From positions 682,001 through 746,000 of the forward strand of contig NW_025767078.1 of the NCBI RefSeq assembly GCF_003918875.1: a DNA stretch of 64,000 nucleotides. The letters run 5' to 3'. The stretch comes from Haliotis rubra. Lineage: Eukaryota. The notes under the pieces were generated by a model. That model made no database searches. It was not told where the DNA came from and saw only the letters and a list, made by a program, of their open reading frames with translations. The first letter of the stretch is position 1, and each line of letters begins with the position of its first letter. The translations under genes were made by a program, and so were the position numbers. Shown one piece after another: positions 24,920 to 52,200 of this stretch.

Positions 24920-25170
24920 TACCTCACCCATCAAGTCCACCACGTCCATCTACCATTCACCCATTAGGTCCACCTTATCCAGCCATCTATCCATCAAGTC
25001 CACCTTATCCATCCATCAAGTCCACCTGATCCATCCACCCATTAGGTCCACCTTATCCATCCATCCATCAACTGCACCCTATCCATCCACTCTCAAGTCC
25101 ACCCGATACACTTGATTCATCCGCCCATCACGTCCACCTCGTCTAACCGACCATCAAGTCTCTCCATCCA
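24920..25170. repeat. Degenerate C-rich tandem repeat (ccatcaagtccaccttatccat-like)
   Basis: Visible imperfect periodicity. Confidence 0.7.
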
Positions 25171-25913: not shown

Positions 25914-25984
25914 TCAGTCAAAGTTGTCGTCTTTGTCTACAGGAAGGACTAATAACAACCTCTGTATCAACCTCGTAAAAGAAT
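25914..25984 (-). CDS. SLC7 last coding exon ([22 protein letters not shown])
   Basis: ttttcag| acceptor; T..Q.L..V motif typical of LAT C-termini; TGA at 25916-25914. Confidence 0.9.
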
Positions 25985-28565: not shown

Positions 28566-28606
<41 letters not shown>

Positions 28607-31600
28607 CCCTGTACATATGTATGTGTGCCTTTATAGTGAAATTCAACTCTTTGGCTCTTTCTGTCTATAACATTGTCCCGCCATATAGCTGGAATATTGC
28701 TGAGTGCGGCGTAAAACTAAACTCACTCACTCACTATAACATTGTCGTCTACATCGGAAGGATCTGGATCTTAAATAAACGAGGCACATACACCAAATGA
28801 CAATGATGACGTTAATACCTTTATAGGGCGGGGCAAGTCTGGCTCCTTCCATCTGAGGTAAACCTGACCAGCCAGAACTGCACACAACACCGTCGCAAAG
28901 CTAAATCCCATCATCTCGATGAGGTAGAATATTTCCTCAAAACACTGCATAATGAGAGTCAGGATGAGCTGGAAGGGAAACCAAATAATGAAAGAACGAG
29001 ATAAAAGAAACATCCTCTCATGGGGAGAAACTTTAGACAGGTGCTGGAAAAAAATAATTCACCGTCCATCATGCAAACAAAATCAATTCGTCATTGAAAA
29101 ATAATATGTTACTTAAAAGTGGTAAATGATATGAAAAAGGTTCGCAACACATTTGGGCGGTGGGTAAAGCGTTAACTCGTCACGCCGTCACATGGGTTCA
29201 ATGTGTGAAACCCATTTCTAGTGTCCCCCGCCGTGATATTGCTGGAGTATTGGTGAAAGAAGTATAAAAGCTAACTCAGTCACTTACAATACACTTATTT
29301 ACTTCTGTTCATGTATTCGCTTTGATTAAACCCCGTTCATGCGATCATAAATGTGGAGTTGACTTTTACGATTACTGAGTGTGGTTCCAAGCGTTTTGGG
29401 ACGGTTATTTCATAACAGTGTCCTTGACCATAACGCCAGTTACGCCAAGAAAGGTCGACAGACATTGCTTGATACTATGTATTGTACGTAATGTCCATAC
29501 AGTCGTTACGATTAAGACCGTAAATTGGACTTAACGTTACGACGTAACAAAAACGTGAAGATCCGATACAGAATCAGTCCTCACTTATCGAAAGAGGAGA
29601 CTATTCGGATCGGGTGGTCAGACTCGCTGGTTTGGCTCATCTATGTCGTCTCTAAATTGCATATATAGATCGATGTTCTAGGTAAATCACTGGATTGTCA
29701 GGCTTGGTTATTTACAAACCAACTGCACATTGCTGAAACACTGGTACAGTTCTCTACACTGTTATTTCACAGAACCCTTACATTGCCTCCAAGGACTCTT
29801 TAAATTGATAATTGGGGTCCCCGGGACATGCAATGGTGACATATTGTAGTACAGCAGAAGACTCCAAACATTTTCACACATGTTAAATTTTTATACTCCT
29901 ATGAGTGGCGTGACAACATTATATCCAATTAGATATAGCAACCGTTGGGATATATTATTTCGGATTATTGATAAGGAACTGGAGAAATAGTTTTGGCACG
30001 GGATCTGTACAATGTCGATCCACAAACTACAAACTGGACAAACTACTGGGATAATTCTTACCATTCCTAATCATTTGCAGTGAAGGCACCAAACATCAGT
30101 TTCTAAAGAGGCAACAGAAGCCTTTCACAAGTGTAGGCCACGTTGGAGACATGTCCGTCCCATACACATCATTTCCCATACATCTGCGGCTGAGGTCTTG
30201 ACCCGAAATTTAAACTTGGATTTGGGCGAAACATGTCAAAGCTTTTGACTTGTCCATTTTGACGTTGTGTGGGATGCTAGTATATGACTGTAGTTTGCCG
30301 TCCCGTCATGGAGTGTTATGACAAACCAGGCAGACATGAAACAAACGCTTCAACAAACTTCATCCACATTTCGGACGCAACACAAGCTTAGCGCTTGTAG
30401 CCATCAGCAGGGAGAATAGATTATCCCTGCCATCAGGCAGCGGCCAAAATCAATGGCACAATTGTGTATCCAGTCATAGGTGCGCATGCGTCAGGGGTTA
30501 TTATCACACAGTTCACCGTCACAACTTAAAAATATATTACCGTTTAAATGATGAAAACAAGTCTATCTGAAAGCAACGAAATGTTATACTCACAATAACT
30601 ATTAAGGATGGCGCCGGTGTTAGATGGTTCACTGTGATCATTGATATTAAACTTGGCAAGTGATTGTTTTTAGCACCAGCGAAAAACAACCTAAAACAGA
30701 AACAAAAGTGTGTCTCTTTAAGGCTGGACAGTCCTGGAGCCAAGATGTAAAGCTCGGCACAAGTATGGTAGTTAAGGCCAGATGTCGTGAGAGGGAGTGA
30801 GTTGAAGTGAGTGGGTTCGAGTTTGTCTGAGAGCAGGGTTCAATTTGTCGGAGAGAGGGGATGATGTTGAGTTTTGTTTGTTTGTTTAACGATTCACTCA
30901 GCAATATTCAAGCTAGTAGGCGGCGGTCTGTAATTAATCTGGACCAGACAAACCAGTGATCAACAGCATGAGCATCGATCCACGCAGCTGGGATACGACG
31001 ACATGTGTTAACCAAGTCACATGATCCCGTTAGTCGCCTCTTATGACAAGCATGGGTTGCTGAAGATCAATTCTAACCTGGATCCTCACGGGTGATTGAT
31101 TGGTGGAAAGCTGGGCTGCTTAGTGGGCAGTCGGGTTGTTTATTGGTGAGTGTCGGGGTTCAGACTGTGGCTTAGGATGGTTGAGTTTGACGGAGAGTGG
31201 GGTTGAGTGTGACGTAGAATGGGGTTGAAATTCTGAGTTGAGATTGCTAATGAGATGAGGTGAGCGTGACGGAAAGTGGGGTTGAAGTTGACAAGTTGTC
31301 GATGTCGTTGGGAGTGAGGTAGACTAAGGCTTAGTCTCTGAATATATATAAATTTGATAGTAACAAACAAGCCCATTTATATTGAAAAGGAGCCCTAGGG
31401 AGACCAGAGATTCAGAACCTGCGGAAATCTAGACTTGCTTTATTTAGGGCTTTAGCACTGCAAAGAGGGCTTCTCAGTATGGAAATTAATGTGGTTCAGG
31501 GACTGTGAGACAGACTAGGGAGTGAGGTTGCTTGGTTGTGGTGGGAAGCGGGGTTTTAGATTGTCGCAGTGGGGATGCGTTTGGCGGAGACTTGGTTTAA

Positions 31601-34600
31601 ATTTAGCTGAGATCAAACTTCTGTTTGGCAGAGAGTAGGCTGAGACTGCATGAGAGGGGCTTTGCGTTTGGTTGAGAGAGGGTTTGCGTTTGGCTGAGAG
31701 AGGTTTTGCGTTTGGTTGAGAGAGGGTTTGCATTTGGTTGAGAGAGGGTTTGCGTTTGGTTGAAAGAGGGTTTGCGTTCGACGGATGGTTGGATCGAGGT
31801 TGTCCTTCCGTTACCTGGACATGGAGAGACAAGATCCGTTCATGGCTCCGATCACAGACACGGCTATCAGCACAGGCATAATCCACTGCAGGACAGGCAC
31901 GGTGACGGCGGAGAACGTCTGAAAACATTCACCAAAACACAACCATGAATGCATAACGCGGTCACATACATACACGACAGGCATATAAAGTTTATCCCTG
32001 GTAAATACTGTCAGTAAACAAACTAAACGATATACCCAGTTCGGGTTAGACCGCGGTCTATTTATTATATCTATTCCATGTGCAGAGTTGTGTCCCTTTG
32101 GGACGCCAGAAACCTATGATCCTGAATTGTCCCGATTACGTTATTAGGTTTGTCAGTACTATTGTGAGTTTCTTGCAGCTGATGAAGTCTCAGAACTGCA
32201 TCAGTTCGGATTTTCCGCACACATCACACTGAAACGCCGTGATATGACTGGAAAACTGGTCACGGAGTCACGCACACACTCACATGCACCCAAATAGGGT
32301 AAGTTGGTGAACGTTGTACCGTACACATGAAGAGTAAAATTCAACATTTGATTGCACGTTGAACATCTACTTCATTTTCCACTTTTGTTCACAATAGTAC
32401 CTAAAAACAAAAAGAAGAAAATGAAGAAAGAGAAATCGGGTTCGACCCCAATATTCTATTGTTCCCTCCCTCAGCCACTGGTAGGGGCATTTGGGTAGCC
32501 AAGTGGTTAAAGCGTTCGCTCGTCACGCCAAAGACCCTGGTTCGATTAACCACATTGGTACAATGTGTGAAGCCATTTTCGGGTGTCCCCCGCCGTGATA
32601 TTGCTTGAACAATGCTTAAAGCGGCGTAAAACTAAACGAAACGTACTCACTCATTCATCCACTGGTTTGCCTGTCCCCATACCCGATTATGTACAAGCAG
32701 CCGTGATATAGCTGGACAACAGCGTGAAAGAACATACTTACGACAGCGACAGCAGTAGAGTCGAGTATCTCCGCCGGTGACAATACAGCGAAGTATGCAA
32801 TGTTGGCGGTGATGTAGACGCTGGTGACAATCGCCATGGAGATGACAATAGCTCGCGGAACATTGCTGCAAATAATTAACAAATTTATGTCTGATTTCTC
32901 ATTTGTGAAAATAGTGGTAGTGGCTTGGTGCAAGGACTTCGAAAACCTTTAGCAATTCATTAGAATTATTCTTTCCAGCTACACCTGGTAACGTCAAAAC
33001 TGTGTGGCTTCAAGTATGACTGACTGACTGAGTTTGGTTTTACGCCACTTTTAGCAATATTCCAGCAACATCATGGCGGGGACACCAGAAATGGGCTTCA
33101 CACATTGTACCCATGTGGGGATTCGAACCCCGGTTTTCGGCGTGACGAGCCAACGCTTTAACCACTAGGCTACCCCACCGCCCCTTCAAGTATGACGTTA
33201 TTTCAAAGATTGGTTAGCATATACAATGTATTAAAGCCGTTGCTTTCATCTGTCTGTTGTTAATCTGCCATGCGGCGATCAGTCTAAGTAAACTTAGCCT
33301 TAATATTATTCGTTACACTGCTATACTGAGTCTAACAAACCCTAGTAGAAGGTCGTGTCAGCTAACCTTTGAGCGACCTATGACCGTCCAAGCAAACGAG
33401 AACGGATTTAACCCATCAGACAACGACTACTTGTTAGGGCTCGGCGGGACTTACAAAACGTTTTTTGGGATTTACTCTTCCCTGGTCGCTGGCACTGATC
33501 TCTCAATAAACGAAAATTCGCATAAAACACAGGTATATTTGGCCTGTAGTGTTGACTGCATGGTTACTATAAGCTTCTGTTTCCGCAAGATGACATCCTT
33601 GAATATTGACCAAAACGCTATTTTCAGCGACTGTTTACTCATTGCGTCCTCCATGTGTATCACTCGGAAGCGATCGTGCTGAAAATAGCATTCGGAATCG
33701 TTCGAGTTTTTAGGTAAAGGTTAAAATGGTATGTGCGAATGTTAACTTTCGCGATTTTGGTCAGCTGTGTTCTGATTGGTCAGTCCAAGAGGTTATCTCG
33801 CGACCTTCTACTAGGGCGTGTTAGACTCAGTATAGCCGTGTAACGAATAATACTGAGCCTAAGTTTACTCAGACTGTTGCGCGACAGAACCAATGACAGA
33901 TTATCTATGTCTATATATAGGAACATATAGCTTCTTTTATGTGACCACGTAACCTGCTAATCATATCACAAAAATCGATTAGATTTACAACAGACGTCTT
34001 TGTCACTGCCAATTATCTCTAAAATAGTTTTGAGGTAAACCCTATCCCCGGGATTTATGCATGGGTTTATGTGATGCTGGAAGTCGTCACTTCTTTCCAA
34101 AACCTTCATCTCACAATAATAATGGAGGTAATTTTAGGAGACGGGAGTGTCCTATTCCAGATTAAAAGATGCTAAAATAGAATAACTACAGACATATGAA
34201 GAATCCAATATTCTTAAAGATATTATAAGAAGAATGTGATTACAATGTATTAATGTCAGATCGAACTTTATTACCTTGAACTATTGTTATAGTCGATGCG
34301 TATAATATTAGCACTCGAATCCAATGTACTTTCATCAGTTTAAGGAAACGAAGGTTTATCATACATCCAGAAATCACGTGGCACACCTACCGATGAGGAT
34401 CTATCACTTCGTCGCACAGGAAGTTCAAGTAGTTCCTGAAATATAAATCAAATGTAGGTTGTAGGAATATCAATGAGTGAGTGAGTTCGGGTTTAAGCTG
34501 CCTTTAGCAATATTACCGCAATATCACGACGGGGGACACCAGAAATGCGCTTCACGCCTTGTACCCATGCGGGAAATCGAACCCGTAAATTCGGCGCCAC

Positions 34601-37600
34601 AAGCGAACGCTTTAACCATTAGGCTACCCTACCGCCCATAATTATATCAAACCAGGTTATAGTGCTGAATAGTGCAACTGCACCGTGACGGTATCAAAAG
34701 GCAGGTACACTCGACTGGGGTATGTCAATTCTTCAAATGAAATATAAAAGTATGAATATAATTCATGATTACATTTATGCTAACTTGGTATTATGTAAAT
34801 ATAAGTACGTATGTTGCATTACGCATACGGGTATCTATTATATTGTATCTGTAAGTATCTAGTATTATGTCCATAAGTATCTAGTATTATATCTATACGT
34901 ATCTAGTATTATATCAATTAGAATGTAGTATTTTGTAAATATATTTCTAGTATTATGTGAATACTTATCGAGCATTATGCAAATACTTATATAGTTCTTT
35001 GAGTGTTACTTATACGGTGTTATGTAACTATGTATCTAGTATTATGTAAATACTCATCTAGTATTATGTAAATACTTGTCTAGTGTTATATACTCATCTA
35101 GTATTATGTAAATACTTTTCTAGTGTTATATAAATACTCATCTAGTATTATGTAAATACTTGTCTAGTGTTATATAAATACTCATCTAGTATTATGTAAA
35201 TACTTTTCTAGTGTTATATAAATACTCATCTAGTATTATGTAAATACGTACCAGCCCCCGAAGGCCCAGAATCCGGAGTAGAAGCCGACAGCAATGGCCC
35301 CGGCGCTATAATCGCTGTCCTCAAACGAGTTCTCAAACTGTTCGGTCTCACCTAAAAACAAGCAGCATTGGAAAACAGATAAGTTGTCGCTTGCCAGGGA
35401 GTGAGTGAGTGAGTGAGTATGGTTTTACGCCGCTCTTTAGCAATTTCCCAGCAACATCACGGCGGGGGACACCAGAAATGGGCTTCACACATTGTACCCA
35501 TGTGGGGAATCGAACCCGGGTCTTCGGCGTGACGAGCGAACGCTTTAACCACTAGGCTACCCCACCGCCCCCGCTTGCCAAGGACGATAGGACATAACAT
35601 TTCTAAAATGTTAATTTCCCCTACAGCATTGAAAGTATAGTGAGTGAGTGAGTGAGTGAGTGAACTGGGATTCGACCTCAGGAGTGTACCAGTTCTGTTT
35701 AATGTGGGAGGAAATCCCGAAGTGATGGAAGTCTCAAGTTACAGATACCATATGCCATTTTAATGGTCAACAAAATGTTTGTGCTTCCGGGTATCCATAA
35801 ACGTTGTTAAACGTCACGACACTTTTCAGGGCACATTGGAACCATGTTGGGAATCGAACTGGGGACATCGATATGATGAACTAAATCTACATCATCAACC
35901 ATCAGTTCAAAGCGATCCACTTTTCTCTGCGTTTGAAAGTAAACGGGTTCATTGAAGATTCAGTATATATATTCTCCATCTATACTCACCCTTGCCAAGC
36001 CAAATGAATCCGATGATAATGATGATGAGGAGAGCGATGAGTTTGCTGCCGGTGATGACAGCCTGTACTTTGGTGGCCCATTTCACGTTCATGCAATTCA
36101 ACGCGATCAACAGGACTGAAAAGACAATGTATAAGTAAGTACGATTTATATGCCGCCTTTAGCAATATTCCAGCATTATCTCCGCAGGATACCAGTATTG
36201 GACTTCACAGATTGTACCCATAAGGAGAATCGAACCCGGGTCTTCGGCGTGACGAACGGATGCTTTAACCATCAGGCTACCCCACCGCCCCACGTTTGAG
36301 ATGAACAAAAAGGTAGTACGTGTGGTCAAACGCCGCTTTATACAGTAATGTAGTCACATAATGATGAGTCTACTCTAGCGTTAGAACAGGTGAGGTGAGG
36401 TGGAATTGGGTTAAACGTCGTGCTTGAGAATATTTCGCTCACATGACGACGTGCATGCGTGTGTATGTGTATGTGCGGCTGCCTGTACTAGCCCAGACTT
36501 AAGCTGGTTTTATAGTGCTAGCCCAGACTTAAGCTGGTTTTATAGTGCTAGCCCACTGAGATACCATGCCGCAGTGAAGCATAAATACCCCACTCAGACA
36601 CATTATACTGACTCCGAGCCGACCAGTCCTTGTTGTACCCATTAATGCCGAGCGCCAGGCAGGGACCAACAAGTACCATATTTTAACGTGTTTTGGTATG
36701 ACGCGGTCGGGGATCGAACTCGCGACCTTCCGCTCTCCGGGCGGACGCTCTAACCACTACACCACGGAGGCGGTCCGTTAGAACCGTATAGAAGGTAGGT
36801 GTTTATCACTGTAATGACACTGATGAGAACGTGACCTCGAGAACGACCCTTCTGTTAATCCTTCTGTTACCCAAATGCACCGCTGTAAACATATACATTT
36901 AGAATATTGTCAGACATAGCTACATGTATATCTATTGTTCTGTGTTCACTCCTCACAGCGTTACCTCTCGTGGTGCTCGCTGTGTGCTGTCAAAGCTCCA
37001 AACTGTGCTCAACGGCCTGCAACCGTGTATGGAGTTAAACTCGTAATTGACGGACATCTATGCTTGCAAACAGGCAGCACATTTCCATCTCAACTGTTTT
37101 GACTGTTTGTCAAATTGATTTTCTATTTCATTTCACGATGATAACGAAGGTGCTAATCAATCTGATGGAACTATTCCGTGAACGGGACGTAGCCTTTACT
37201 GTAACGTCTGCCACACTGATATGGTGGTCTGTATATACCGTATTTCTTCTAATAAGCGCCCCCGACGCTCAACAGACCCAGCAACTTATTAGAGGCCCGG
37301 CGCTTATTAGAGATCCGGCGCTTATTAAAATACCCTGTATTTTTAAAAGCGGGGGTGAATATTTTTAGACCAAGGGAGAATACATTTGCGAAAAACTGCA
37401 AAGGTCTATACCCGGCGCTTATTAGAGACCCGGCGCTTATTTCTGAAAGCACTGCTTTACCCCCGGCGGTTATTAGAGGCTCGGCGCTTAATAGAGGAAA
37501 TACGGTACTTGACTTCTGATATAAGCAACCGGATTGTACTGAGCGGTATATATTTATATTATGTAACCGAGATTTTATATAACCGACAGGATACATGTGA

Positions 37601-40600
37601 TTAGAGAGGCTGACGAGCTTGTTATCAAGGATGGGGTGAAGATAAAGGTTGAATGGATATGCACACAATGTAGGTCAAGGTCATTACCAAATAACCTATG
37701 ACCTACATAGATCAGAGGTTTTCCTTCGTCAACATCCGAGACACGTATCGCACATCTTGGACATTTTAACCCATGCGTAAAATAGGAAGAGGAGTGAGTG
37801 TGATTTTCCGCCGCTTTAGCAATATTCCAGCAATATCACGGTGGGGGGACACCAGAAATGGGCTTCACACATTGTACCCATGTGGGGAATCAAACCCGGG
37901 TCATAGGCGTGACGAGCGAACGACTTAACCACTAGGCTACCCCACCGCCTCTAGCAATCCTAACAGTATCACAAGTGGGGTATGAGAATGGGCTTCATGT
38001 ATTGTACCCATGGGGGAATCTTTCCGATCGTTCAGGGTGACGAGGGAACGCATTAACTGCTAGATTGTTCCCGTCCACCCCGTCGCCCCGCGCCCCTGAA
38101 ACATGCATGTATTCAAGACACGCAGCATTAAGGCGCCATGTTGAACAGCGAGCATACGTCAGTACATTAACCATTAGCATGTTGTATCAGTCGGATCATC
38201 CATGTATGTGCTTCCTACCTACCTACCTACCTTTGACATGATCACATTATCTACTTTCGAGATAGGTCAATGCGCGCGATGTTGCGTCACGCAAACTTCC
38301 TGATCACGTGTCGATCACGTGGTAACTTCTTCCAACAGCATTAACATCACCCGACACACATCAGCGACGGGTGTTTGACACACAGGTCATGGCAATAACT
38401 TCAGATGTCATCTGTCCTGGCCACTGATTCAAGTTAAAAATGCGACACATCCATTTCCATAATCATAATCATAAATATCATAATATCAGCCCGCATATCG
38501 ACCTACACGTCAAGCATCGTGAACTTTGGGAATTAAGGCCAGGTGTAACACAGTATTTGGATCCCCGTAGTATTTGGCATCGGACCCACAACACTACGGG
38601 TCTGGGTCCGATCCACAAAACGTTCGGAGCGCTACGACATTCGTAAGCCTATGATAAACTATAGAGTTACGACAGGTCGTAACGTTACGAACTTTTTTGG
38701 GGATCGGGACCAAGGGTGCAACGGGCGGTGTATGCGTAGATTCGCGCTGTTCACACTTACAAACTCGCTCTGTTGGATAACGGACCTATGTCAAGGATAC
38801 TTCTGCAACTCAGTAAAATTACTATCCGTTGGGGTGTCTACCTGCTGTGAGGTGGATTCATTATTTATTCAAGGGTAATCATATTCCGTTTTTACGCAGC
38901 ATCAGCGTGGTTACGTTTTTGTGAAACCATTTATTATGTCCTTCAAAACTCTTCGTAACTATACGATATTTTTAAATGTCTGGGTCAAAGTCTGCTTTAC
39001 AGATAAAGCTATACATATCGCACTTGACGTATCATTACACAAGACTGTACCATATGCTGGACACAGTCATGAACTGATGCACTCGTATATCTATTGAAAC
39101 CTTGTTTGAACGGGTCTTAAATTTAGGGCGATATTGTTTTGGATAATAATGAACTGAAGTATAGCTGACCTGCACAGACGTCGTATGGAATAAACTGACG
39201 TTCTCAAGAAAGTACACACCTAGTGCTTTAGGGTTATTTAACCAAAACGTTGGTTATTTGTTTTAATAAAAAACTTATGGTGTATCTCGAAATTGTGTCT
39301 TTTCAGAGATATTTGGGTTTTGTGTTAACACCTTTACCTATTTGGACTAAAGCAGTAGCTACACTTGGTGCACAGACTAAAAAGGCTATTATGACTTTGA
39401 ACAAAGATTAAAAGAAAGTTTAAAATATACCATGTCAAGATTTATTTCAGATATTTGATGCTATGACTGTTCCAATTGTGTGTTATGGTGCAAAAGTATA
39501 GGGGACCTCATATTGTAAAATCATGAAGATGTTTTGCATAAAATATGTAAATGGTTTCTGAGAATGTGTAAAACAACAAATGATCCTATGGTTTGGGGAG
39601 AATGTGGCAGAACCCCTCTCCAACTGGCATTTATATTTCATAATGTGTATGGTTTCTCATTACATAAAAATCTGTAGCTATATCTCGGGTTGGAGTGAGG
39701 AATGGGGGTACATTCAGTTTTAGATATATCATAGTCATGTGATTCTCCATTTCCAGTAGACAACACGCAAATTGTCCGATGTGTAATCAACTTCTCGGTA
39801 GCATCACGCAGATGGTGCCATACCATGATTATTGTTATACTTTTTAATGTGGATGTTATATTCAAATGATACAAGCCAAATGAATAAAACTAATAAATAT
39901 ATTCTTCTTTACTATTATTCCAGTTTTGAAAGCACATTGTTAAAAACACATGGTTTAATTAATCAGTTATTTGTTCCAAATTTATTAGATCTATTTAATA
40001 TTAAATATATAATGTGGTAACAACCATTTTCTAGTTACTAGCGTAAAGTTTAGTTCAAACATACAACAGGAGAATATGGGACCAAATCATCGAATTATAC
40101 GTCATCAAATTTGCTAAATCAAAGATGCTAACTACAATCAATCAATGTGGTCGTTCAGATCCATGTTTAATGTGTACGATTTCGTGACAACAGCGACCTG
40201 ACATGAAATATCACCTCACATGTCGGTGTTGAAAATGGTGTGTGAAAATGGCCGTTGTTCTTGACGTATACTTTGCCATAGTATCGATGAAAATGCTATG
40301 GAAAAATTCTAACCATCCCTTCTCGAATTGTTCTGTAGTAAATATATGGCGTGTCGCCCAGCAGTGATGGTCGCCATTCGGAAGTGATTGCCGGGGTCAG
40401 TCGCGAAGCGTTAGCGCAGCAGGCCCCGGGAACCAGGCTGGGCAGGACATCGAGCTAAACTATATTCGTGACTTCTATCAATCTATTCCACGTCGGTTAG
40501 CTAAAGTTCTGGCCATGAAGGGACATCTTACAAAGTATTAAGGTATGTAGATATCTTTGTCATTGATAGTTGACGCCATATAAAATCGAGTCGAACGGCT

Positions 40601-43600
40601 GCCATTTTGAATCGTACAGATGTAACTGGCACGGCACTGTATAGTCCAACAATATCACGGCGGGGCACTCCAGAATTGGGCTTCACATATTGTTGTACCC
40701 ATGTGGGGAATTGAACCCGGGTTTTCGGTGTGATGAGTGAACTCTTTAACCACTAGGCTATCCTACCTCCCCAACATGTGATCAAAGGAAACAAAGCAAA
40801 TATAACATTCTATACAGGGAGTGAGTGAGTGAGTGAGTGAGTGAGTTGGGTTTAGCGCCGCTTTCGTTCATATGGTCGATATTTTAGTGCCAACACAATG
40901 TGGAAGGAAAGACCGAAATGGTGCTGTGTTCGATGCTTACTTTGGTGACATCCATGACCAGGTGCTGATCAAGTCGGGAACATTATCAGGGCAAAGTCGG
41001 GTATAATCCCGTCACTCTACCAAGCCAAATGTCAACGCAAGCATTCTGACCTCAAATACCCAAAGAATTCTACCCATAAGTATATTTTGGTGTTTCACTG
41101 TGTGTTATGGTCCACAGGAATATTGTGTAGACATTCATGTTTAAGCTGCAGTCGCATGTCTGTTAGACAATAATCCAATTGTACAACTTGATTGTTTTCT
41201 ATCGTTGTTTTCTGATCCATTTAGGCATTTCAGGGGATCAAGCATCAAATAGGCGTGTCATACAGGTTACACACCACCAAATCGGAATACGTAATTTAAC
41301 AAACACTTTTCGTAGGGAGCCTTCAGTGCAGACTGAATCATCTGACAGCTGTGATTGGATGATTTGGTGTAAGATGTTTGTGTTCTTTAAATATACATTC
41401 ATCCAGTAATTAAAACTGACTATGTTTCAAATAATGCTGTCATTTATACATGATGAGTGAGTGAGTGAGTTTGATTTTACGCCGCTTTTAGCAATATTCC
41501 AGCAATATCACGGCGGGGGACACCAGAAATGGGCTTCACACATTTTGTCCATGTGGGGAATCGAACACGGGTCTTCAGCGTGACGAGCGAACGCTTTAAC
41601 CACTAGGCTACCCCACCACCCCCTTTTACATGATGACTTATACTGAATGTGACCACAGTTATTTTCAAGGGGTTGCCGTTTCGTGAGGAACTGGGGTTGG
41701 CTATTCAGCTGCTGGTACTCGGAAAATTGGTTAGCTGAGGTGGTCATATTTTTTAATTGCTTCTGTAAGGCCAGATTATGCAGTCATGTACAGGTAATAG
41801 CTCTTGATAGCTTAGGTAAGTTTTTAAAAAATATAACGTTACTATAGAAGTCAGTGGGAAAATATTTGTTTTTCTGTAACCTGTCTTTTTTTGGTCTTTT
41901 TGTAAATGTTTTTTTTATATTCAGCCTTGGTAATAACAGTTTTACATAAACCATACAAGTCCACGTGGACAGGGGTTACTGGTTTATAGCCTTAAACTTT
42001 TACCAATTATATTTTCTATTGTAAATCTATCATGAGTGCTTCAACATACACAAACTTTACCTATATATAATTCCAGAGCATATTACAAATCTATAATGAA
42101 AAGCTTCATAGAAACTTTGATATTGGTATAGTGAGACTTTTATATAGAGTATTTTAAATCCAAATTTAAAAACTCAAATATTTACCAATTATGATTTTAT
42201 TGTAAATCTAACATGTAACCTATCTTGATACCTACTGTTGACTGTCGCTGCAACGAGCCATGTCGAAGAAAACGGAGGGTCACAGTGTGGAAATACCGGG
42301 CGGAGAAGGTAAGTAGCGACGGTGAGACCAGCGACGGCTTGGGACATGGGAACACTGATGATTAGGTACACCCAGAGACACAAAAATGCCGGAAGATCCC
42401 CTAGTGAACGTTTAAGGTACATATATTCCCCTCCACTTTCAGGCATAGAAGCGCCAAGTTCTGCATAGCACAGGGCACATAGTGTCGAGTAAACTCCGCA
42501 CAGCGCCCAAGTGACACAAGACATCCCGACGGAGCCCACATTGGAGAGAATCCCCACTGGGGAAATAAAGATCCCCGCTCCGATAATTCCACCAACAATT
42601 ATGGAAACACCATGGAAAAGGTTGATCTGCCTTTTCAGCTGGACTTTCTTGTGTTGTTTCACGTCTTGGCGGGCATGTCCCCCATACCTGTTTGGTCTGG
42701 CGGCCATATTGGATAATATGAGGTACAATGAGATTACCATATCAACCCGAGGACCGAAGGCCACGAGGGCTGATATGGTAGTCTCGGGCTGATATGACGG
42801 GCGAAAGGAAACTGTCATATCATAACCTTTTTGTCAAATATCATGTCAAGGGACGTATCTCTAAAATAAAATAGGCTCCGTCCCTAACTTTTCGGGTGTT
42901 TGCGTTTATTCATTCCGTATCAGTTTAGTAGCCGGAAATACGGTTGAATTGGCTTATATGCATTTTCGGCCCGGGTGGTCAATATGGACATATGCCGACA
43001 GTCAGTATTGTATGTGCAAATTGGTCCATATTATTCATAGGTATATGATAATACCTTTCATCACTTAATACAGTGGTATTTTCCCTGATATGGACTTTTT
43101 TTGCCACCCCGATATGGGCAGGATCAGCATGGTCATATCTGAGATGCAATTAACATGAAGCTTTATGTTATGCCTTACGGCATCGGTCATATATGGGTGT
43201 CTCGGGATGATATCGGGCAAGATATGAAAAAAATAATAATCTCTACGTGTCAGTCTAGTTGAAATTGCATGTATCATCCTCCGGATACGGACATTGATGT
43301 ACCAAGAGACATAAGATTTGCCGTACATTGTAAAGAATTCCAGCCAGTCACACAAAACTTCCCACTCTGAAAACACGCCATCAAATAAGGAAACAGAAGT
43401 TGATCTGCTTTTCCATCTGCACATTCTGATGTTAAGTGATGTGGCTATTCTGAGCAAACTCCTACAGCTTTAACAATATCGATAGGAAACATCATACGGA
43501 ACGGAGCATCCTTCCAAAATATACTCATGCCAATAATCCTTGTCACCCTTCAAAATATTGGAGAGGGGTGGGGTAGGGGATGACAAGCTATTTATTGTAC

Positions 43601-46600
43601 AGAAGCCTTCGAAAACATTTTCACATCAGTGCTCAAGTATGACTGAGGAAGTGTCAGCTTATCGGATAAGATGCAAGTTAGTGCATCCCCGATAACTGAG
43701 AAAGATAAACATTGCATAACCAGAGCAAATGTGTCGAAGACCGTAACATAACATAATGAAAATAGACTGTGAACACACGCGTTATCGCAATCTCGTGATA
43801 TTTTGTCTGCTGTCTATAGATACGAACATTGTGTGGGTATGTCTGGTCTATACAGTAGAGGCAAGAATTTAGTAGAGACAAAGCAGAACTATTGTCCTGG
43901 GTATCAGTTTGTCTGACTGGAATAAACATTAAGATGGTAGGATTTAGTCCGAGAAATCAAATAATAAATGTTAGGAAGATATATTACATCATAGCTACAG
44001 ACGCTGTCTCTACACACGAGAATCATACTTCGATACACTCACCGATTTGTAGGTGAGGCGAATGAAGGACAGACACCGGAATGCATTATGGGAATGTAGA
44101 CACGGGCATTCTACCCTGCTAATAGAGGTCTCTGCCAAACTGCTGCCAAGCTTTTTTCGAACAGTTTAACGGTTACTGGGAAATGGATCGCAAGGTTCCA
44201 CCAAGGACTGCGTGACATGGAGGCAAGTGACATAATCTCTGCATGACCATTTTGTCCCACTAACGTTGTTTTTAAGAAGATTTTTGCACGGTACTACACC
44301 CGATAATGGTTACTTTTGTATTGGATGGACCTCGCCGGTACAATTGCGTTGTGTGTTGAAGCCTTGCCGTTCATGCTTACACTATGCCAGTGTGTGACAT
44401 CAGTATTTGTGTTGACAGTTCTGTTCTTCCGTTCCACTTCCATATCTCCAGGAACTTCTACAATATCTCCCGTATTAACCTTCGAGGGAACCATGGTGCT
44501 TCACCATTAGTCAGAATCGTTATGAATCTTGGAGTACAGGTGATTCTGAATGCTTCTTGTAGAACCCTAGCAATGCTCATCTATGTGCCACCCTGCTGGT
44601 GATGCATGGTCTGCCAATATTCTGAAGTGTTGTACTTAACCTTAAGCGAATCTGGTCCATGTGTCATATTGTTGCTGATGCCTGGTCTATGGACATTCTG
44701 GAGGCTTCAAGTAGAAAACTTGCGTAGCTCATCCATGTGTCATCTTGTTAGTGATGTGTGATCTGTGAACATTCTAAAGGCTTCAAGAAGGGCACTTGCG
44801 AATCTCGTGCATGTGTCATCTTGTCGGTAATGTATGATCTGTGAACATTCTGAAGGCTTCAAGTAGAACACTTGAGAATATCGTCAATGTTCCATCTTGT
44901 TGCTGATGCCTAGTCTTTGAACATTCTGGAGGCTTCAAGTAGAACAGTAGTGAATATCGTCCATGTGCCATCTTGCTGGTGATGCCGGGTCTATGAACTT
45001 TCTGGAGGCTTCAAGAACGACACTTGCGAATCTCATCCATGTGTCATCTTGTTAGTGATGTGTGATCTGTGAACATTCTAAAGGCTTCAAGAAGGGCACT
45101 TGCGAATCTCGTGCATGTGTCATCTTGTCGGTAATGTGTGATCTGTGAACATTCTGAAGGCTTCAAGTAGAACACTTGAGAATATCGTCAATGTTCCATC
45201 TTGTTGCTGATGCCTAGTCTTTGAACATTCTGGAGGCTTCAAGTAGAACAGTAGTGAATATCGTCCATGTGTCATCTTGTTGCTGATGCCTGGTCTATGG
45301 ACATTCTGGAGGCTTCAAGTAGAAAACTAGCGAATCTCATCCACGTGTCATCTTGTTAGTGATGTGTGATCTGTGAACATTCTAAAGGCTTCAAGAAGGG
45401 CACTTGCGAATCTCGTGCATGTGTCATCTTGTCGGTAATGTGTGATCTGTGAACATTCTGAAGGCTTCAAGTAGAACACTTGAGAATATCGTCCATGTGC
45501 CATCTTGCTGGTGATGCCGGGTCTATGAACTTTCTGGAGGCTTCAAGAACGGCACTTGTCAACCTCATCCATGTGTCATCTTGTTGCTGATGCCTGGTCT
45601 ATGGACATTCTGGAGGCTTCAAGTAGAAAACTTGTGAATCTCATCCAAGTGTCATCTTGTTGGTGATGTGTGATCTGTGAACTTTCTGGAGACTTCACGA
45701 AGGACACTTGCAAAACCCGTCCATGTGTCATCTTGTTGGTGATGCGTGGTCTGTGAAACATTCTGGAGGGTTGTATTTGGACTTATATTTGGTCTTATAC
45801 AAATGTCATCTTGTCGGTGATCTGTGAACATTCTGCAGGCTTCAAGTAGGTCACTTGCGAATCTCGTCTGTGTGTCACCCTACTGGTGAAGCCTGGAATA
45901 TGAACATTTTGGAGGCTTCAAGTTAAACACTTGCAAAACTAGTACACGTGTCATTCTACTGAGTGAGTGAGGGTATGTTGCAATAAGCACTCAGCAATAT
46001 CCAAAGAATTTCACAGGTGAGGTAGTACGTCAGTGGGTTATGAGCGGGTACCTGAAACGTCGTGGTACGATTGCTACGAAAGCGTCAGCGGGATTAGTGA
46101 TCTGTTCGAGCAGCAGTTTACATTGTCACGAAATTGCTAGAAAAAATCGCTGTGTAAGCACAAACAATTCAATTTCGTCATGACGATTTTCGCACTGAAT
46201 CAAACTGAATTAATCGTTATGTACACAGTATGTGGGTGTGAGTTAAAATCGGCATTTTGTAAGGTATAACGCGACGACATAAAGTTTGTACGTATACACA
46301 AGTGTTTGGTACACAGACTTCTCCCATCTGACCTTGACCTACAATAAACCCAGCGCTAAACAAAATTTCTTTGTGTAGATACGTGTTTCGTTATAATGAA
46401 TCTACGAAGGAACGCAGAGTTAACACGTGCTAGTTTGGTTGAGTAACTGATATATCTCAGTGAAGTCTCTTCATTCTTGTATGAATTAAAATAGAACGAC
46501 CCAGTGGTTTGTTTCACCTGTGACTGCCGTTATCTTATCTAAGCAAATAACACAGGGTCTACATTCATGTAACCTACGGTGTATGAGTTTCACGTAACTT

Positions 46601-49262
46601 GGTTCAAAATAGAACCAAACACCGATAAGTAATCTATGCACGATGTATGTATGGTAACGTATAAACAAGCAAATATTGAGTCTTCTGTGGGTGTAGTTTG
46701 TTCGTTTGTTGATTAAAGCCACGGTCTGCAATTTTCAAGCCATATGGTGGAGGTTCGTAAATTGTCGAGTCTGAAAATCCAAGGATTGGTATAAACAACC
46801 GGGATACCATGACACGCATCGGGTCAGGGAGCCTGACCGCCTGACCGCCTGACCGCCTGATCCTCCAAGTCGGCAGGGGGTCACCATATATTCACACTGT
46901 TGTCTGATTCCTCATTGTTCTCTGTGGCCTTGGTTTGTTCTGTTGACGCAGGACAGAAGAGTGCCCGGGGTTCTCCACTCCGAGCACAGTCCATCTGACA
47001 CCCTGAGATGTTTCCACATTTCCAAGTTCCAGGTGGGTCAACTAAGCAACGCTTCCTGGTAGAAGTCAAAAGAATTTACTGTCTGGGCGTGGTGTAGGGG
47101 GGCCCTGAGCTGATGATGAACCTTACCAGTTCGACTGTGCCGCTCTCACCCACTACCTGCATAAAATCTATTTCAGTCGGTATTGCAACAACAACAACAA
47201 CAACAACAATAGTGTCACTACTTATAGCCACCATACACCCGTCGCCTATCTACAACCAGAGACCATATACTAGTACTAGTATATCTATTATATGGTCTCT
47301 GCTACAACGCTTAGAGAATGTATTGCTATTACATCATATGTTCCCTGGATATTCTCGAACTCTCAATAACAAGCCTGATGATAGTGGGTCCTATATCCCC
47401 AATATAGGACCCTCTGGGTGATGTTTATCATATATCCTCCCACATATCCCATGCATCATGCATACTGAACAATTGTCTGCATGAAATGGCGTTATAAGGA
47501 GGACGAGTCCAAACCAGTACACATATTCCCCAAGGGTGGACTTGCCTGTGCTCATCCTTTCGCGAATGCCTTGTATCACTTAAGATTCATAGCCACGTGC
47601 GATAAACTCCGAATCACTTTCTTATGATAATGGAAAGAGTTCTGTGCTTTAATACCGCGCCACGCCCTGACTAATATCAGCCTGGTTCCCGGGGTCTGTT
47701 GCGCCTGCGCTAACGCGCCGACTGTCAGTGTTGGAGCGTTAGCGCAGGCGCAACAGACCCCGGGAACCAGGCTGGGACTAATATTTGAATATTCTTTTGA
47801 GTGCGAAACCCTGATTCGTTTTCAACATCTAACCAATCTAATTGAAATGCGTGACACGTTGTTACTACAACATATTCCATGTGATAGCATAACAATCCCA
47901 TTTGTCACTGTTGACCCACAATGCACCATTGCCCTACAGTCAAATACGAACGGTCATCGACGTGGAAAATATCTGCTCTTATAATATTATACAAGATGTC
48001 TTTTGGGGCAAATCTGTACTGACGCGTCATTTGCCAATCACATGGGGATTATTTTATTATATTCCGCAGGTATTTACTAGCCCTGCTCCAAGGCTGTACT
48101 GAAGGCTAATACCATGCATGGATAGTAATTCCATCCTTTAAAGAGGCAAGTCTAGATAAGGGGACAGGGTCCCAGTCTGTTCTTTATTTTATTTTTAGAA
48201 ATTATCATTTACACTATTAATTCTATCTTTGGAGACTTGTGCAAGTCTAGTATTTACTAAATGTCCGAGATATGGCGCCGCATGCCTGGCACTCCTCATG
48301 CATATTTTCATTTAATATTTTTCTGCTGGTGCTACGTTCTTGTCATATGTTCTAAACATATTACTCATGAAAGCAACAGCCCATGCATACCGATAGAGTA
48401 TGATGCTTGAGCCGCACATTTGAAAACTTGATTTGAACCCAAAAATTCCAACGTTATCAAAAAGGTATTAAGCTGAAAACAGTCGCAGGTTCATTCCCAT
48501 ATGGAATACACCATCACCGCAAAACCAGTTTGGTTTGTTTAACTTATCCACCATCAAAACTGGTATACGTTCTTTTGCATGGCGGGTTTACCTGAATCGT
48601 TCTCAGAACAAATAACAGTTTATATTTCGTTTTATGTCTTTACATGATTACATATGTTATAGAAACAGTTTACTGGAAAATATTCGGCAGCTGGCCTTAT
48701 TGTGTGACGATCAGTTACAGATGTATTAAACAGATGTGAATGGTTCTCTTGTTTTGGAATCGTTAAGGATCATGGATTGATACTTACTGATGATTATCGC
48801 TGCGAGGAGCCTGATAGATGAAGAGGGAGGGTCGCAGTCGGGGAAGACGGGACGAAGAATGTAGGTGGCAAATATCAGACTAGCAGCGGCCACCCCCACT
48901 GGGCACAGAATGATAAGATTCACCCACAGACACAGAAACGCCGGACAATCTCCAAAAGCACGTTTAATGTACACATATTCCCCTCCCGATTCTGGAATCG
49001 AAGCACCAAGTTCTGCAAAACACAAGGCACAGAGTGTCGAGTAAACTCCACACAGCGCCCACATTACACAAGACATTCCGACAGAGCGCACATTGTAGAG
49101 GATCCCAACTGGGGACACGAAAATCCCTGCTCCGATGATAATCCCGACGATTATAGAGACACAGTGAAAGAGGTTGATCTGTTTTTTTAACTGCACTTTT
49201 TGCTGAGGTTGGGAGTCGAGGCCTTGAGCGAGGGTCCTCTTGCCTTTAGCCCCAGCTGCCAT
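25914..49262 (-). CDS. SLC7 heteromeric amino-acid transporter light chain (LAT/y+LAT/xCT/b0,+AT family); join([49262-48788 or 42707-42236],36115-35990,35351-35252,34435-34391,32865-32742,31918-31815,30690-30594,28968-28819,27717-27543,25984-25914), 488 or 487 aa
   Basis: GT-AG introns, consistent phases, open frame. TM1 IIGAGIF, AELG..PESGGEY, FP.CDPP (Cys for the SLC3 disulfide), TM6 [31 protein letters not shown]. Confidence 0.95.
26884..27234 (-). mobile_element. tRNA-derived SINE family C (~350 bp; body resembles the Meta/MESC domain, from memory)
   Basis: A/B boxes, body cgtaccaaaagac...ccctgcctggcgctcggcatt, (cacct)n tail, TSD cggacaaacagaag. Confidence 0.85.
27240..27412. mobile_element. 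Fold-back MITE with 8-bp TSD GTCCGGAC (P-element or hAT superfamily)
   Basis: Near-perfect palindrome cacagggg...cccctgtg; TSD at 27232-27239 and 27413-27420. Confidence 0.85.
27543..27717 (-). CDS. SLC7 exon 9 (LPVVVP...GVPVY...KHKL)
   Basis: tttcag| acceptor, G|gtaagg donor. Confidence 0.94.
28317..28562 (+). mobile_element. Family B element
   Basis: Near-consensus copy with (ctca)n tail. Confidence 0.85.
28819..28968 (-). CDS. SLC7 exon 8 (LILTLIM...[13 protein letters not shown])
   Basis: cttccag| acceptor, AAG|gtatta donor. Confidence 0.94.
30594..30690 (-). CDS. SLC7 exon 7 ([12 protein letters not shown]...TPAPSLIVI)
   Basis: ttttag| acceptor, |gtgagt donor. Confidence 0.94.
31320..31518. 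repeat. Dispersed repeat family E (~200 bp); other copies ~20399-21025 (interrupted) and 26096-26308
   Basis: Three homologous copies gcttagtctctgaatata...ggttcagggactgtgag. Confidence 0.8.
31660..31780. repeat. 22-bp tandem repeat (gagagagggtttgcgtttggtt)n
   Basis: About 5-6 units downstream of the SLC7 exon 6 donor. Confidence 0.85.
31815..31918 (-). CDS. SLC7 exon 6 ([15 protein letters not shown]...[10 protein letters not shown])
   Basis: ttttcag| acceptor, AG|gtaacg donor. Confidence 0.93.
32742..32865 (-). CDS. SLC7 exon 5 ([10 protein letters not shown]...STAVAV)
   Basis: ttgcag| acceptor, |gtaagt donor. Confidence 0.94.
33021..33184 (-). mobile_element. SINE family A
   Basis: TSD ttcaagtatgac on both sides. 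Confidence 0.9.
33280..33876. mobile_element. MITE with ~75-bp TIRs
   Basis: cagtctaagtaaacttag...ccctagtagaaggtcg mirrored at the right end. Confidence 0.8.
34391..34435 (-). CDS. SLC7 exon 4 ([15 protein letters not shown])
   Basis: atttcag| acceptor, CG|gtaggt donor, 45 nt. Confidence 0.92.
34850..35246. repeat. 22/44-bp AT-rich tandem repeat (tagtattatgtaaatactcatc)n
   Basis: Tandem periodicity abutting the SLC7 exon 3 donor. Confidence 0.9.
35252..35351 (-). CDS. SLC7 exon 3 ([12 protein letters not shown]...[11 protein letters not shown])
   Basis: tttttag| acceptor, TG|gtacgt donor. Confidence 0.93.
35400..35571 (-). mobile_element. SINE family A
   Basis: TSD cgcttgcca(g/a)gga; near-consensus copy. 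Confidence 0.9.
35990..36115 (-). CDS. SLC7 constant exon 2 ([17 protein letters not shown]...WLGK)
   Basis: ttttcag| acceptor, G|gtgagt donor, 126 nt, phase 1-1. Confidence 0.93.
36388..36775 (-). mobile_element. SINE family C with an internal 30-bp tandem duplication
   Basis: Homologous to 26884-27234; TSD cgttagaac. Confidence 0.85.
37236..37507. mobile_element. Tc1/mariner(pogo)-type MITE
   Basis: ta-ccgtatttc...gaaatacgg-ta, internal cccggcgcttattagag subrepeats. Confidence 0.8.
38603..38712. mobile_element. Short palindromic MITE; second copy at ~57991-58098
   Basis: ggtccgatccacaaaa...tttggggatcgggacc, two homologous copies. Confidence 0.7.
39260..39630 (+). mobile_element. Decayed LINE ORF2 fragment related to the element at 53.5-55.7 kb
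   Basis: [20 protein letters not shown] and [10 protein letters not shown] parallel LFDQLVKPILLYGAEVWG and MVYGELGRYP. Confidence 0.7.
41455..41623 (-). mobile_element. SINE family A
   Basis: A/B boxes, (gagt)n tail on the + strand. Confidence 0.85.
42236..42707 (-). CDS. SLC7 first coding exon, proximal variant 1B
   Basis: ATG at 42707 aligns with the 1A start, 472 nt, A|gtaggt phase-1 donor at the homologous codon. Confidence 0.88.
43259..43458 (-). pseudogene. Decayed third copy of the SLC7 first exon (pseudo-exon)
   Basis: Minus-strand fragments FAQ...[18 protein letters not shown] (43321-43341) and [12 protein letters not shown] (43268-43306) are collinear with exons 1A/1B; stops, frameshifts and a ~60-nt deletion. 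Confidence 0.85.
44560..45960. repeat. 76-bp minisatellite, ~18 units, with higher-order structure
   Basis: Unit starts at 44734, 44810, 44886, 44962, 45038 (period 76). Confidence 0.95.
47678..47774. mobile_element. 97-bp hairpin MITE with 9-10-bp TSD
   Basis: Perfect arms cagcctggttcccggggtctgttgcgcctgcgctaacgc; flanks gactaatat; partial relative at ~40408-40440. Confidence 0.85.
48788..49262 (-). CDS. SLC7 first coding exon, distal variant 1A (N-terminus to start of TM4)
   Basis: ATG at 49262, 475 nt, A|gtaagt phase-1 donor. Confidence 0.93.
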
Positions 49263-52200
49263 CCTTGCTGTTCAGGGATCGTCGTTCGACTGTCACGAAC
49301 AGTAAAATTTTGGTCACGTTGAATATGCATGTCAGATACCAAGGTCTACATACTGCGGCCCTGACACAGTATACAAAGTAGTTAGTAGCGGTTTGTACTG
49401 TCAAAATGATTAGATTACACGGTGCTCACCCTTGAACCTGCAAGTAGGCTATTGTGTCTAAACACTGACATCACCTTACATAAGGTGCGAGGCTATCAGA
49501 TCATCACCCCGTGACCCACACCTACGTCCATAGCTGAAACAGCATCCGTATCTTTGTTACGTATATCTCCACTGACGTATCATATAACCCATTTTATGCG
49601 TAGAGGGCATTAAAAAGGGTTTCAATAATTTTTTATGACTTTGATGTCACACCCGTATTATTCACACCCGTTTTACATTCAAAGACCTCTTTAAGGCAGA
49701 TACTATAGCGATTGAGTTAAGTTTTACGCCGCACTCAGCAATATTCTAGCTATATGGCGGCGGTCTGCCCGATACTAGAGACAGGAATACAACAACTACA
49801 ACAACAAGAACAACAGTATTTTTGTAAAACTGAAACAATAATAATGGTCATGTTTTTGCTTCATGTTTTAGGGATGCCATAGTCAGAATCCCTGAACCAT
49901 GTTAATTTCCATTCCTCTCATCCCTTACTCTGGTGTTACAGCTCGAAACAGGGCAGGTTTAGATTTCTTTAGGTCTATATCATGTGAGACCTATGTTTGT
50001 TGTGAGAGATATAAGATGGATCAGGTGGTCAGGTTGGTGACTTGGTTGACATGATGTCATCGTGCCCCACTGACACCAATATTATGGATCGTTCCTCATA
50101 ATATCAATCGCAGGATTGTCTGGTTCAACCTCAGTTATTTACAGACTGCCGTGATTTAGCTGGAATACTGTTGAGTGCGACGTTACTCAACATTACCCCA
50201 CAAACGTTAACTCAGCGAGTCGCCTCTTACGACAAGCATTGGTTGCTGAAGACCAGTTCTAACTCTGATCTTCAGAGTTGGTGTCGGCAGTCTTGCTAGT
50301 ATCTCAGATCCAGCGGAACAGTGATGGAATACTAAAACAGATCTGATCGGTTTGATCACAAAGGTGCTGATTTAGGAAACATCAAATGTAAACTTATAAA
50401 TGCGGTTCGTCTCATTTTAAAGAAAAGCCGGAAATAGATTCAAGAATGTCGTCAAAACGTTATGGATTTTATGTTCAATTCCAGCAACCATCAACAGCCA
50501 ATACACATGACTATAACATTTTTTTTTAAATCAGTATTTCGAAGGTTCGTCACGCCGAGAAGGTCGATTCCCCATGGGCACAATGTGTTAAGCCCATTTC
50601 TGGTGTCCCCGCCGTGATATTGCTGGAATATTGCTAAAAGCGGCGTAAAACTAAACTCAATCAGTATTTCGAGAAGGTCCTTCACCAGTCACGGTACACT
50701 AGTTCACGATTCTGGAACACTGTACCTATCTTCTAAACCAAAAGATGAACGAGGAGACTGTGAAAAATGTTGAACCAATTATTGATTTAATTACAGGTCG
50801 CTTTCCAAGTGCTTGGGCTACAACAGTCATGAGCGCAGTTTCATGACGATGTGTTCTTATCAGATGGGTACTTCCCCGAAGATTCAGATATTCTTGGAGA
50901 AAAGTAACAGTGGGGTTGCGAAACGAACGTACACATTCCCATATCGACAATATATGTTACTGACGTATAGGAACACATTACACGCTTAAAAGGTACAGTT
51001 TATTGTTTTTGTAGATTTTAAGCAACCGTTTTATTTGGTAAGTAGAAGTAAATTGATATTTTAGCATGAAATTGAATAGACATACACTGAAAAACTCTAG
51101 AGTTTAGAGAACGTAACGTAAATTCAGATGTTTATATGTCTGCAATAATGGAAACACATAATCTGAGTATTATGCTTGCTTGCTTGGTCTACAGCAAGGA
51201 TGCACTCTCTGTCGTTTACATTTTCTGTATTTTAAACTATTTTGAGGAATTATATTTTCTAGGTTTAGATTTGTATTCTTATCAGAGGAAATGTACAATT
51301 AAATGTCTTTCATTAGGGTATCTTAGAGGACAGAGGCACTTTCTTTTAAGTTAGTGAATGAGTGAATTTGTAAATGAGTTTGATTTAATGCCGCTTTTTA
51401 CAGTAAACAGCTTATTGTTGGAGTGGTGGAGGTCTGAGACGATAGGGGGCGGTGGGGTAGCCTATTGGTTAAAGCGTACGCCCGTCACGTCGAAGACCCA
51501 GGTTCGATTTCCCACACGAGTACAATGTGTGAAGCTCATTTCTGGTGTCCCCTGCCGTGATATTGCTGGATTATTGCTAAAAGCGGGGTACAACTAAACT
51601 CACTCACTCACTACTTGTGACTTTAGCTAGCTACCAGTAAGGCAGTACTGGAGGTCCGCTAATTGTTGGGTACAAGGAGCTATTGTCCCCTGCTGTGATA
51701 TTGCTGGATTATTGCTAAAAGCGGCGTACAACTAAACTGACTCACTCACTCTGAGACGTTTGCCACGTAAGTGAAAACAACTGAGCTCGAGTATGATACT
51801 GACAAACTTATTCGCCTTGACGCCATGTTCGAGAAATAGTTTATCTGATACTATAGATAATGTTTATATTACTATACTGATACCTTCAGTCATATCCATC
51901 GTGTTACCGATAGCGTTATTAGTCAATAATGTGTCGCGCCATCAAGCTGAAGAATGTATCTTAACGGGTTTAAGGAAGCACTCCTATAATATTTTATAGC
52001 TACGTTCTCATTGATTGGACCTTGCTTTCAACTGTTGACACAATAATGAGCGAGTTCGTTTTCCGCGTTGACCTGATGTGAGAGCAGCCTGGTTCCTGGA
52101 TACGGAGTATTACCATCTCCGTCCTTATTACTATAATAATACTTAATTTAATACTTTTGTATTATTCTGCAGTTGAATTTATACTAGATGGTTGGTTTGT

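Follow-up and report, generated by a model that had tools for sequence, protein, structure and literature searches.

Variable first exons and the SLC7 locus of Haliotis rubra

The UGT1, GCNT2 and protocadherin (PCDH) clusters contain pseudo or relic variable exons and undergo lineage-specific exon duplication and loss, a mode of evolution termed birth-and-death (PMC1885805). The Ugt1, Gcnt2 and Ugt2a organizations studied were stated to be vertebrate-specific (PMC1885805), and gene conversion between neighboring variable exons has been described for protocadherin (cited in PMC1885805). In a literature search, we found no such array for Haliotis or for SLC7 genes. We analyzed a 64,000-nucleotide stretch of the blacklip abalone Haliotis rubra (contig NW_025767078.1, positions 682,001 to 746,000; hereafter the window; G+C ~40%), which carries an SLC7-type (LAT-like) amino acid transporter gene on its minus strand. 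A single set of nine constant exons is preceded by two intact versions of the first coding exon (1A and 1B). A third, broken copy of about 180 bases, here called the relic, is found in the first intron between 1A and 1B, at 43441-43259 on the minus strand. Very probably, in our view, the relic is what decay has left of the H. rubra ortholog of 1C, a third alternative first coding exon of this gene that is intact in the red abalone, H. rufescens.

Like UGT1, GCNT2 and PCDH, the abalone locus has tandem homologous first exons, each with its own ATG and splice donor, in front of one constant set. The copies have been gained, turned into relics or deleted differently among relatives: the red abalone has three live copies, the blacklip abalone two and the relic, H. 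asinina two, and the black abalone (H. cracherodii) one live copy and one broken copy. Unlike those clusters, the abalone array has two or three copies, is found in a mollusc and belongs to a membrane transporter, the variable part being transmembrane segments (TM) 1 to 3 of the APC fold, and the use of exons other than 1A is suggested by their conservation. A further comparison is with tandem mutually exclusive internal exons, where local exon duplication also gives rise to alternative versions of one segment; the abalone copies differ from these in being first exons with their own start codons, presumably chosen by promoter and not through competition between splice sites, and in that one copy is dead. 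Like the SLC7 light chains (LAT1/LAT2, y+LAT and xCT), the live abalone exons match PF13520 (AA_permease_2): exons 1A, 1B and red-abalone 1C score 67 to 73 bits over profile positions 1-126 (cut-off 27). The domain is also present in the full-length orthologs, and the RefSeq name is LAT2-like. The relic, unlike the light chains, is far too damaged to score, and its pieces, broken by stops and frameshifts, are below the length for a Pfam scan.

On balance we favor the view that abalone LAT-like SLC7 genes are invertebrate variable-first-exon clusters, in which promoter-selected exons swap TM1-TM3 onto a constant body and the array evolves by birth-and-death, gene conversion and transposon hits at a pace that lets congeners differ. 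If this is true, an architecture so far found mainly in vertebrate UGT1, PCDH and GCNT2 extends to molluscan membrane transport, and the current RefSeq models miss alternative isoforms. TM1-TM3 line the substrate path in APC-fold transporters. The analysis flags unannotated alternative N-terminal modules made of these segments in aquaculture-relevant species.

The relic is a broken homolog of the first coding exon

A DNA local alignment of 43200-43500 (minus strand) scored 35 against exon 1B and 28 against exon 1A. One thousand dinucleotide shuffles gave a mean of 10 (sd 1.3, maximum 19), which corresponds to z-scores of 13 to 19, well clear of the shuffled sequence against which a preliminary description of this DNA, made from the letters alone, had proposed to judge the match. 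Any other 300-nt chunk of the window, on either strand, scored 17 or less. With red-abalone exon 1B as the query, the relic scored 54 against a window background of 11.9 ± 2.3. The background over shuffles and the remaining window was about 10 to 12, with maxima of 19 to 21. In a tblastn search of the window with exon 1A, the relic was the top non-self match (E value 0.003). The 3′ piece of the relic alone is weak at the DNA level against the rubra exons (10 versus a shuffle mean of 8.8). At the protein level it scored 40 against 1B, which was reached in 14 of 5000 shuffles and in none of 970 real chunks; against red-abalone 1C, 25 of 29 bases match with a score of 21 (0 of 5000 shuffles). The relic is thus a homolog of the SLC7 first coding exon. 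It is single-copy in the 1.38-Gb assembly. Five exon-1 queries, run against the whole window, found no further relic and no trace of the missing 3′ third. A 39-base similarity between 43229-43191 and 42811-42773 was considered as a non-collinear stretch of 1B homology and rejected; sequencing depth places both segments in repeated elements.

The relic consists of two collinear blocks. The 5′ block (43307-43441, minus strand) corresponds to the part of exon 1 for the last stretch of the N-terminal tail, TM1 and the loop between TM1 and TM2, and encodes a peptide of ten letters followed further on by GILYNVR. VQMEKQIN and GILYNVR stand in one frame, which is broken by TGA at 43383-43381 and at 43350-43348; this block also has deletions of 4+4, 1 and 8 bases. 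At 43302-43306 a CTTGG marks the junction of a 53-base deletion that takes out most of TM2. In 1B-type exons the 53 bases lost here are flanked by CTTGG at alignment columns 142 and 195; the sequence to the left of the CTTGG in the relic fits the first of these sites and that to its right fits the second, a configuration that suggests deletion between short direct repeats (microhomology). The 3′ block (43259-43301, minus strand) is in another frame and encodes a 13-letter peptide with TGA at 43276-43274; the 12-letter peptide of the preliminary description lies in this block, in a frame differing from that of the 5′ block.

All three peptides that the preliminary description had reported as collinear minus-strand remnants were recovered, and its coordinates were right within 17 bases. 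The stops, frameshifts and loss of most of TM2 that it had noted correspond to three in-frame TGA codons, deletions of 4+4, 1 and 8 bases and the 53-base gap. Homology ends at 43259; the relic lacks the final 174 bases of the exon, which encode TM3, and has no splice donor. At the other end, the ATG and about 50 first coding bases are missing and a repeat stands in their place. Because it has no start, no frame and no donor, the relic is dead and cannot contribute protein. For annotation, the exon-like signal here is that of a pseudo-exon and is not to be forced into a gene model.

The surroundings of the relic were examined with contigs of DNA runs carrying three organism labels, placed on 42000-44400. 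Positions 43232-43457 are at single-copy depth. The repeat in place of the ATG (43458-43619) is high-copy, with a contig word depth of ~1000 times single copy, and the interval from the relic to exon 1B (42729-43231) is at 10 to 240 times single-copy depth, with a patchwork of repeated elements at 42747-43231. The patchwork has boundaries near 42767, 42811, 42950, 43051-43060 and 43231 with many contig breakpoints, and it has no homology to the spacer between 1C and 1B in the red abalone. Since depth is single-copy inside and high on both sides, the relic is an island between inserted repeats. It is common to all three organism labels with 0 to 3 differences, and its death therefore predates their divergence. 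In run X8 (organism C), the relic (43279-43416) shows 1 difference in 138 bases, versus 30 in 422 in nearby unique intron (43702-44124) and 11 in 426 in exon 1B; the contrast could stem from constraint close to the 1B promoter or from a divergent haplotype. Run X2 gives no clear difference between the relic (5 of 271) and either exon 1B (8 of 611) or intron (11 of 354). Between species, the identity of the relic to red-abalone 1C (75%) is near the 71 to 73% of alignable intron blocks, a value that would fit neutral evolution since inactivation; the within-group contig counts are sparse, and those of one run point away from it.

Exon 1C in other abalones

The corresponding loci of H. rufescens (L031), H. 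asinina (L032) and H. cracherodii (L033) were compared via orthologous RefSeq proteins. In H. rufescens, three copies of exon 1 are open, and all have an ATG and an A/GTAAGT donor in the same phase: 1A at 10001-10474, the intact middle copy 1C at 24613-25089 and 1B at 26086-26562 of L031. H. rubra and H. rufescens share one order of landmarks, namely a tandem array with a 74- to 76-base unit, a unique block (43961-43706 in the window, 21880-22154 in L031), 1C or the relic, and 1B. The tandem array, at 44543-45954 in the first intron of the window (~76-base unit, ~18 copies), has kept its position in H. rufescens and H. cracherodii with ~70% identity and served as the synteny landmark. A related species with an intact third exon, which the preliminary description had proposed to look for, is thus found in H. 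rufescens at the syntenic position.

The other two species differ. In H. asinina 1A and 1B are intact, and no trace of a third copy above shuffles was found in the 826 bases upstream of 1B or in the whole first intron. In H. cracherodii (L033 13706-15115), the upstream flank of 1C with its ATG and 17 bases is followed by a 929-base insert and then, beginning near base 15, by the body of 1B; neither the body of 1C nor the spacer remains. This 1B body lacks its own in-frame ATG, and the Glu of its conserved GGEY motif has changed to Gly, so that the H. cracherodii 1B exon may be dying. Four abalone species thus show four outcomes for the array.

In H. rufescens, 1C and 1B lie 1 kb apart. They are 95 to 100% identical from the ATG for ~150 bases and 85 to 93% to about base 330; the last 150 bases are 58 to 72% identical and both flanks are unrelated. 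The synonymous divergence (dS) between the two in the 5′ part is 0.24, versus 0.70 between 1A and 1B. The homogenized 5′ two-thirds would represent a gene-conversion tract. Close neighbors have been homogenized here as in the protocadherins; unlike the protocadherin case, the abalone example is one pair in one lineage and is read from an identity profile. A separate observation in L031 is a recent partial duplicate (12897-13101, 99% identity) of the last 104 bases of exon 1A and downstream intron. It lies 2.4 kb downstream of 1A with a CA-rich microsatellite before it, and is absent in H. cracherodii and in the window.

Exons 1A, 1B and 1C are under purifying selection. The dN/dS ratio is 0.01 to 0.04 among 1A orthologs, 0.12 to 0.14 among 1B orthologs and 0.14 to 0.33 for 1C against the others. 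Together with the kept start codons and donors, these low values argue that 1B and 1C are coding exons under selection. The same features suggest that 1B and 1C are used as alternative first exons; each may have its own promoter.

Probable assignment of the relic to the 1C lineage

Over 167 aligned sites, the relic is 75% identical to both 1C and 1B of H. rufescens, 73% to 1B of H. cracherodii, 67% to 1A and 1B of H. rubra, 64% to 1B of H. asinina and 44 to 53% to other paralogs. Reference-free blastn gave the same ranking (72 to 74% versus 64 to 65%). The relic is equally close to red-abalone 1C and 1B because those two have been homogenized. The preliminary description had suggested a phylogeny of the copies. 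Maximum-likelihood analysis of the 5′ part placed the relic, on a long branch, inside the 1B/1C clade with an ultrafast bootstrap (UFboot) of 96. In the tree of the 3′ part, red-abalone 1C forms its own lineage, outside the 1B clade (89) and outside the pair of H. rufescens and H. cracherodii 1A (91). In this part, dS is 0.75 between 1C and 1A of H. rufescens and 0.39 between the 1A orthologs of H. rubra and H. rufescens, which makes the third lineage older than the species split. At eighteen sites, the rufescens/cracherodii (1C-type) exons are fixed for one base and the rubra/asinina 1B-type exons for another; the relic has the 1C-type base at 13 and the 1B-type base at 3 of them. Judged by such sites, the relic is not a young copy of rubra 1B.

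Several points weigh against this assignment. The tree alignment of the relic was built piecewise against red-abalone 1C and may favour that exon slightly. The identity of the relic to 1C and to 1B of the red abalone is equal, and at the 11 sites in its span where these two differ, the relic matches each five times. Its place within the 1B/1C clade is poorly supported (UFboot 43 to 66), so that orthology to 1C rests mainly on synteny and the higher identity. Four species were compared, and the dS values derive from 14 to 25 synonymous differences. As to the exons themselves, the RefSeq models in four Haliotis species use only 1A. No protein headed by 1B or 1C was found in the searched collections (full-length; 115-366 aa), and no RNA evidence was found of 1B or 1C splicing to the constant exons. 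A look for RNA runs containing the stretch gave none, and neither 1B nor the relic had a contig in one small run guessed to be RNA.

A different origin would be that the relic is an independent tandem copy, made in the rubra lineage, of only the 5′ part of 1B, was never a complete exon and is not an ortholog of 1C. Such a copy would fit the position of the relic only ~550 bases upstream of the 1B ATG (nearer without the inserted repeats), the lack of any trace of the 3′ third of the exon, the weak support inside the 1B/1C clade and the lack of a third copy in H. asinina. It fits poorly with the 67% identity to rubra 1B, which is lower than the 75% to red-abalone 1C and 1B. The relic also shares none of the eight states that are derived in rubra and asinina 1B, and so it split off before those species did. 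The intact H. rufescens exon stands at the syntenic place, and its 3′ part is an old separate lineage. We regard an independent partial copy as quite unlikely. It is highly improbable that the intron received a fragment of another SLC7 paralog or a processed copy. The H. rubra genome has 74 SLC7 exon-1-like matches from which such a fragment could be drawn; the relic, however, matches only 1A and 1B of its own locus, scores at background (at most 17) against each of the 28 other SLC7 paralog loci compared, with even the nearest paralogs as distant as given above, and occupies a place syntenic with that of an exon of this gene in another species.

The case for short peptide motifs matching non-coding DNA by chance is the 3′ piece alone, which is not significant at the DNA level against the exons of the window. 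The likelihood that chance explains the whole is practically nil: no other place in the 64 kb, on either strand, comes close to the relic, its blocks are collinear, and the 3′ piece is more similar to the sequence of another species than to that of the window. A further possibility, compatible with decay of exon 1C, is that the coding function is dead and the island was kept or co-opted, for example as promoter or 5′ untranslated region of 1B. The relic is just upstream of 1B and is the only single-copy stretch between two repeat blocks, and it varies little in run X8. Those counts are very small and come from contigs only, run X2 shows no clear difference, and 1B of H. asinina is intact without such an island upstream; we consider co-option unlikely.

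Decay of exon 1C in H. rubra thus stands as the preferred reading. The preliminary description had called the relic an intermediate or ancestral-like relative. This look is better explained by membership in a separate old lineage, 1C; the relic keeps ancestral states where 1B of H. rubra and H. asinina is derived. Its intermediate look has a counterpart in the living ortholog, red-abalone 1C, which is itself a mosaic with a 1B-like 5′ part (presumably through conversion) and a 3′ part nearer to 1A. The proposal that exon 1 was duplicated without the downstream exons agrees with three exon lineages upstream of one constant set.

Proposed history of the array

The ancestor of the sampled abalones would already have carried exon 1 as a tandem of three copies (1A, 1C and 1B, in that order), each with the N-terminal tail and TM1-TM3, its own ATG and a same-phase donor, and nine shared constant exons downstream. 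In the rubra lineage, 1C may have fallen out of use and drifted, with small deletions breaking the frame. The 53-base deletion between two CTTGG repeats would have removed TM2, and repeated elements would have replaced the 5′ end with the ATG and the 3′ third with TM3 and the donor. In H. rufescens, 1C presumably stayed intact while its 5′ two-thirds were homogenized with 1B through gene conversion. H. asinina would have lost 1C entirely. In H. cracherodii, the 1C body and the spacer were probably lost and the body of 1B was split from a 1C-derived ATG by the 929-base insert. We infer this order of events, with the roles of microhomology and conversion and the splicing of each exon from its own promoter.

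The place of the relic closest to the 1C lineage, the intact ortholog and the single constant set support the birth-and-death reading that the preliminary description had offered: copy number in this small array changes from species to species through gain and loss. As direct and datable evidence, the relic shows that duplication and loss have affected first exons of this gene separately from its other parts. The locus also offers a small, tractable case of how variable-exon arrays start, how neighbors homogenize and how copies die, by microhomology deletion and transposon insertion.

Live first exons and constant exons

Two long open reading frames (ORFs) on the minus strand, 48726-49262 and 42189-42818, encode the same protein segment (N-terminal tail and TM1-TM3) with 72% identity. 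DNA homology between exons 1A and 1B is limited to 48777-49199 versus 42225-42647 (76% identity), and the flanks have no similarity. The coding part of exon 1A (48789-49262, donor A/GTAAGT) is the first exon of the H. rubra RefSeq protein. The coding part of exon 1B (42237-42707) starts with an ATG (MAARP...) and has an open frame and the donor A/GTAGGT; it is orthologous to the intact 1B of H. asinina and H. rufescens. The ORF extends 5′ of the 1B ATG (MTVSF...), and this extension is partly repeat. An ATG and a same-phase donor (A/GTAAGT or A/GTAGGT) at the same codon position are present in 1A and 1B of H. rubra, H. asinina and H. rufescens and in 1C of H. rufescens. The upstream flanks of 1A, 1B and 1C are mutually unrelated.

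The single set of nine constant exons, located with database proteins, spans 25917-36116 on the minus strand. In order, the exons are at 36116-35985, 35352-35251, 34434-34372, 32864-32742, 31918-31814, 30692-30567, 28968-28816, 27720-27517 and 25985-25917. No second copy of a constant exon was found between the two first exons (42.8-48.7 kb). Exons were searched individually, and full-length comparisons used database proteins. Identity to the H. rubra RefSeq protein XP_046579434.1 is 100% for exon 1A and ~98 to 100% for the downstream exons where the match follows the exon bounds. Elsewhere in the H. rubra genome, two further SLC7 exon-1 copies lie 12 kb apart on the same strand of one contig (G000:C2663, 113953-114366 and 126346-126759); the pair could be tandem genes or a second first-exon array.

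Other repeats in the window

A dispersed repeat of ~165 bases, similar to a short interspersed element (SINE), has many copies in the window with 80 to 90% identity, at 41454-41625, 37792-37949, 36134-36291, 40641-40772, 51444-51612, 59904-60066 and 62516-62682; its copies in the H. rufescens locus are 88 to 93% identical. A short tandem repeat at 10670-11210 (plus strand) translates to peptides resembling a ten-letter unit and gives spurious weak matches to the TM1 motif of 1B. Upstream of exon 1A, at 53613-55627 (minus strand), there are reverse-transcriptase-like ORFs, likely fragments of a retrotransposon of the type without long terminal repeats (non-LTR).

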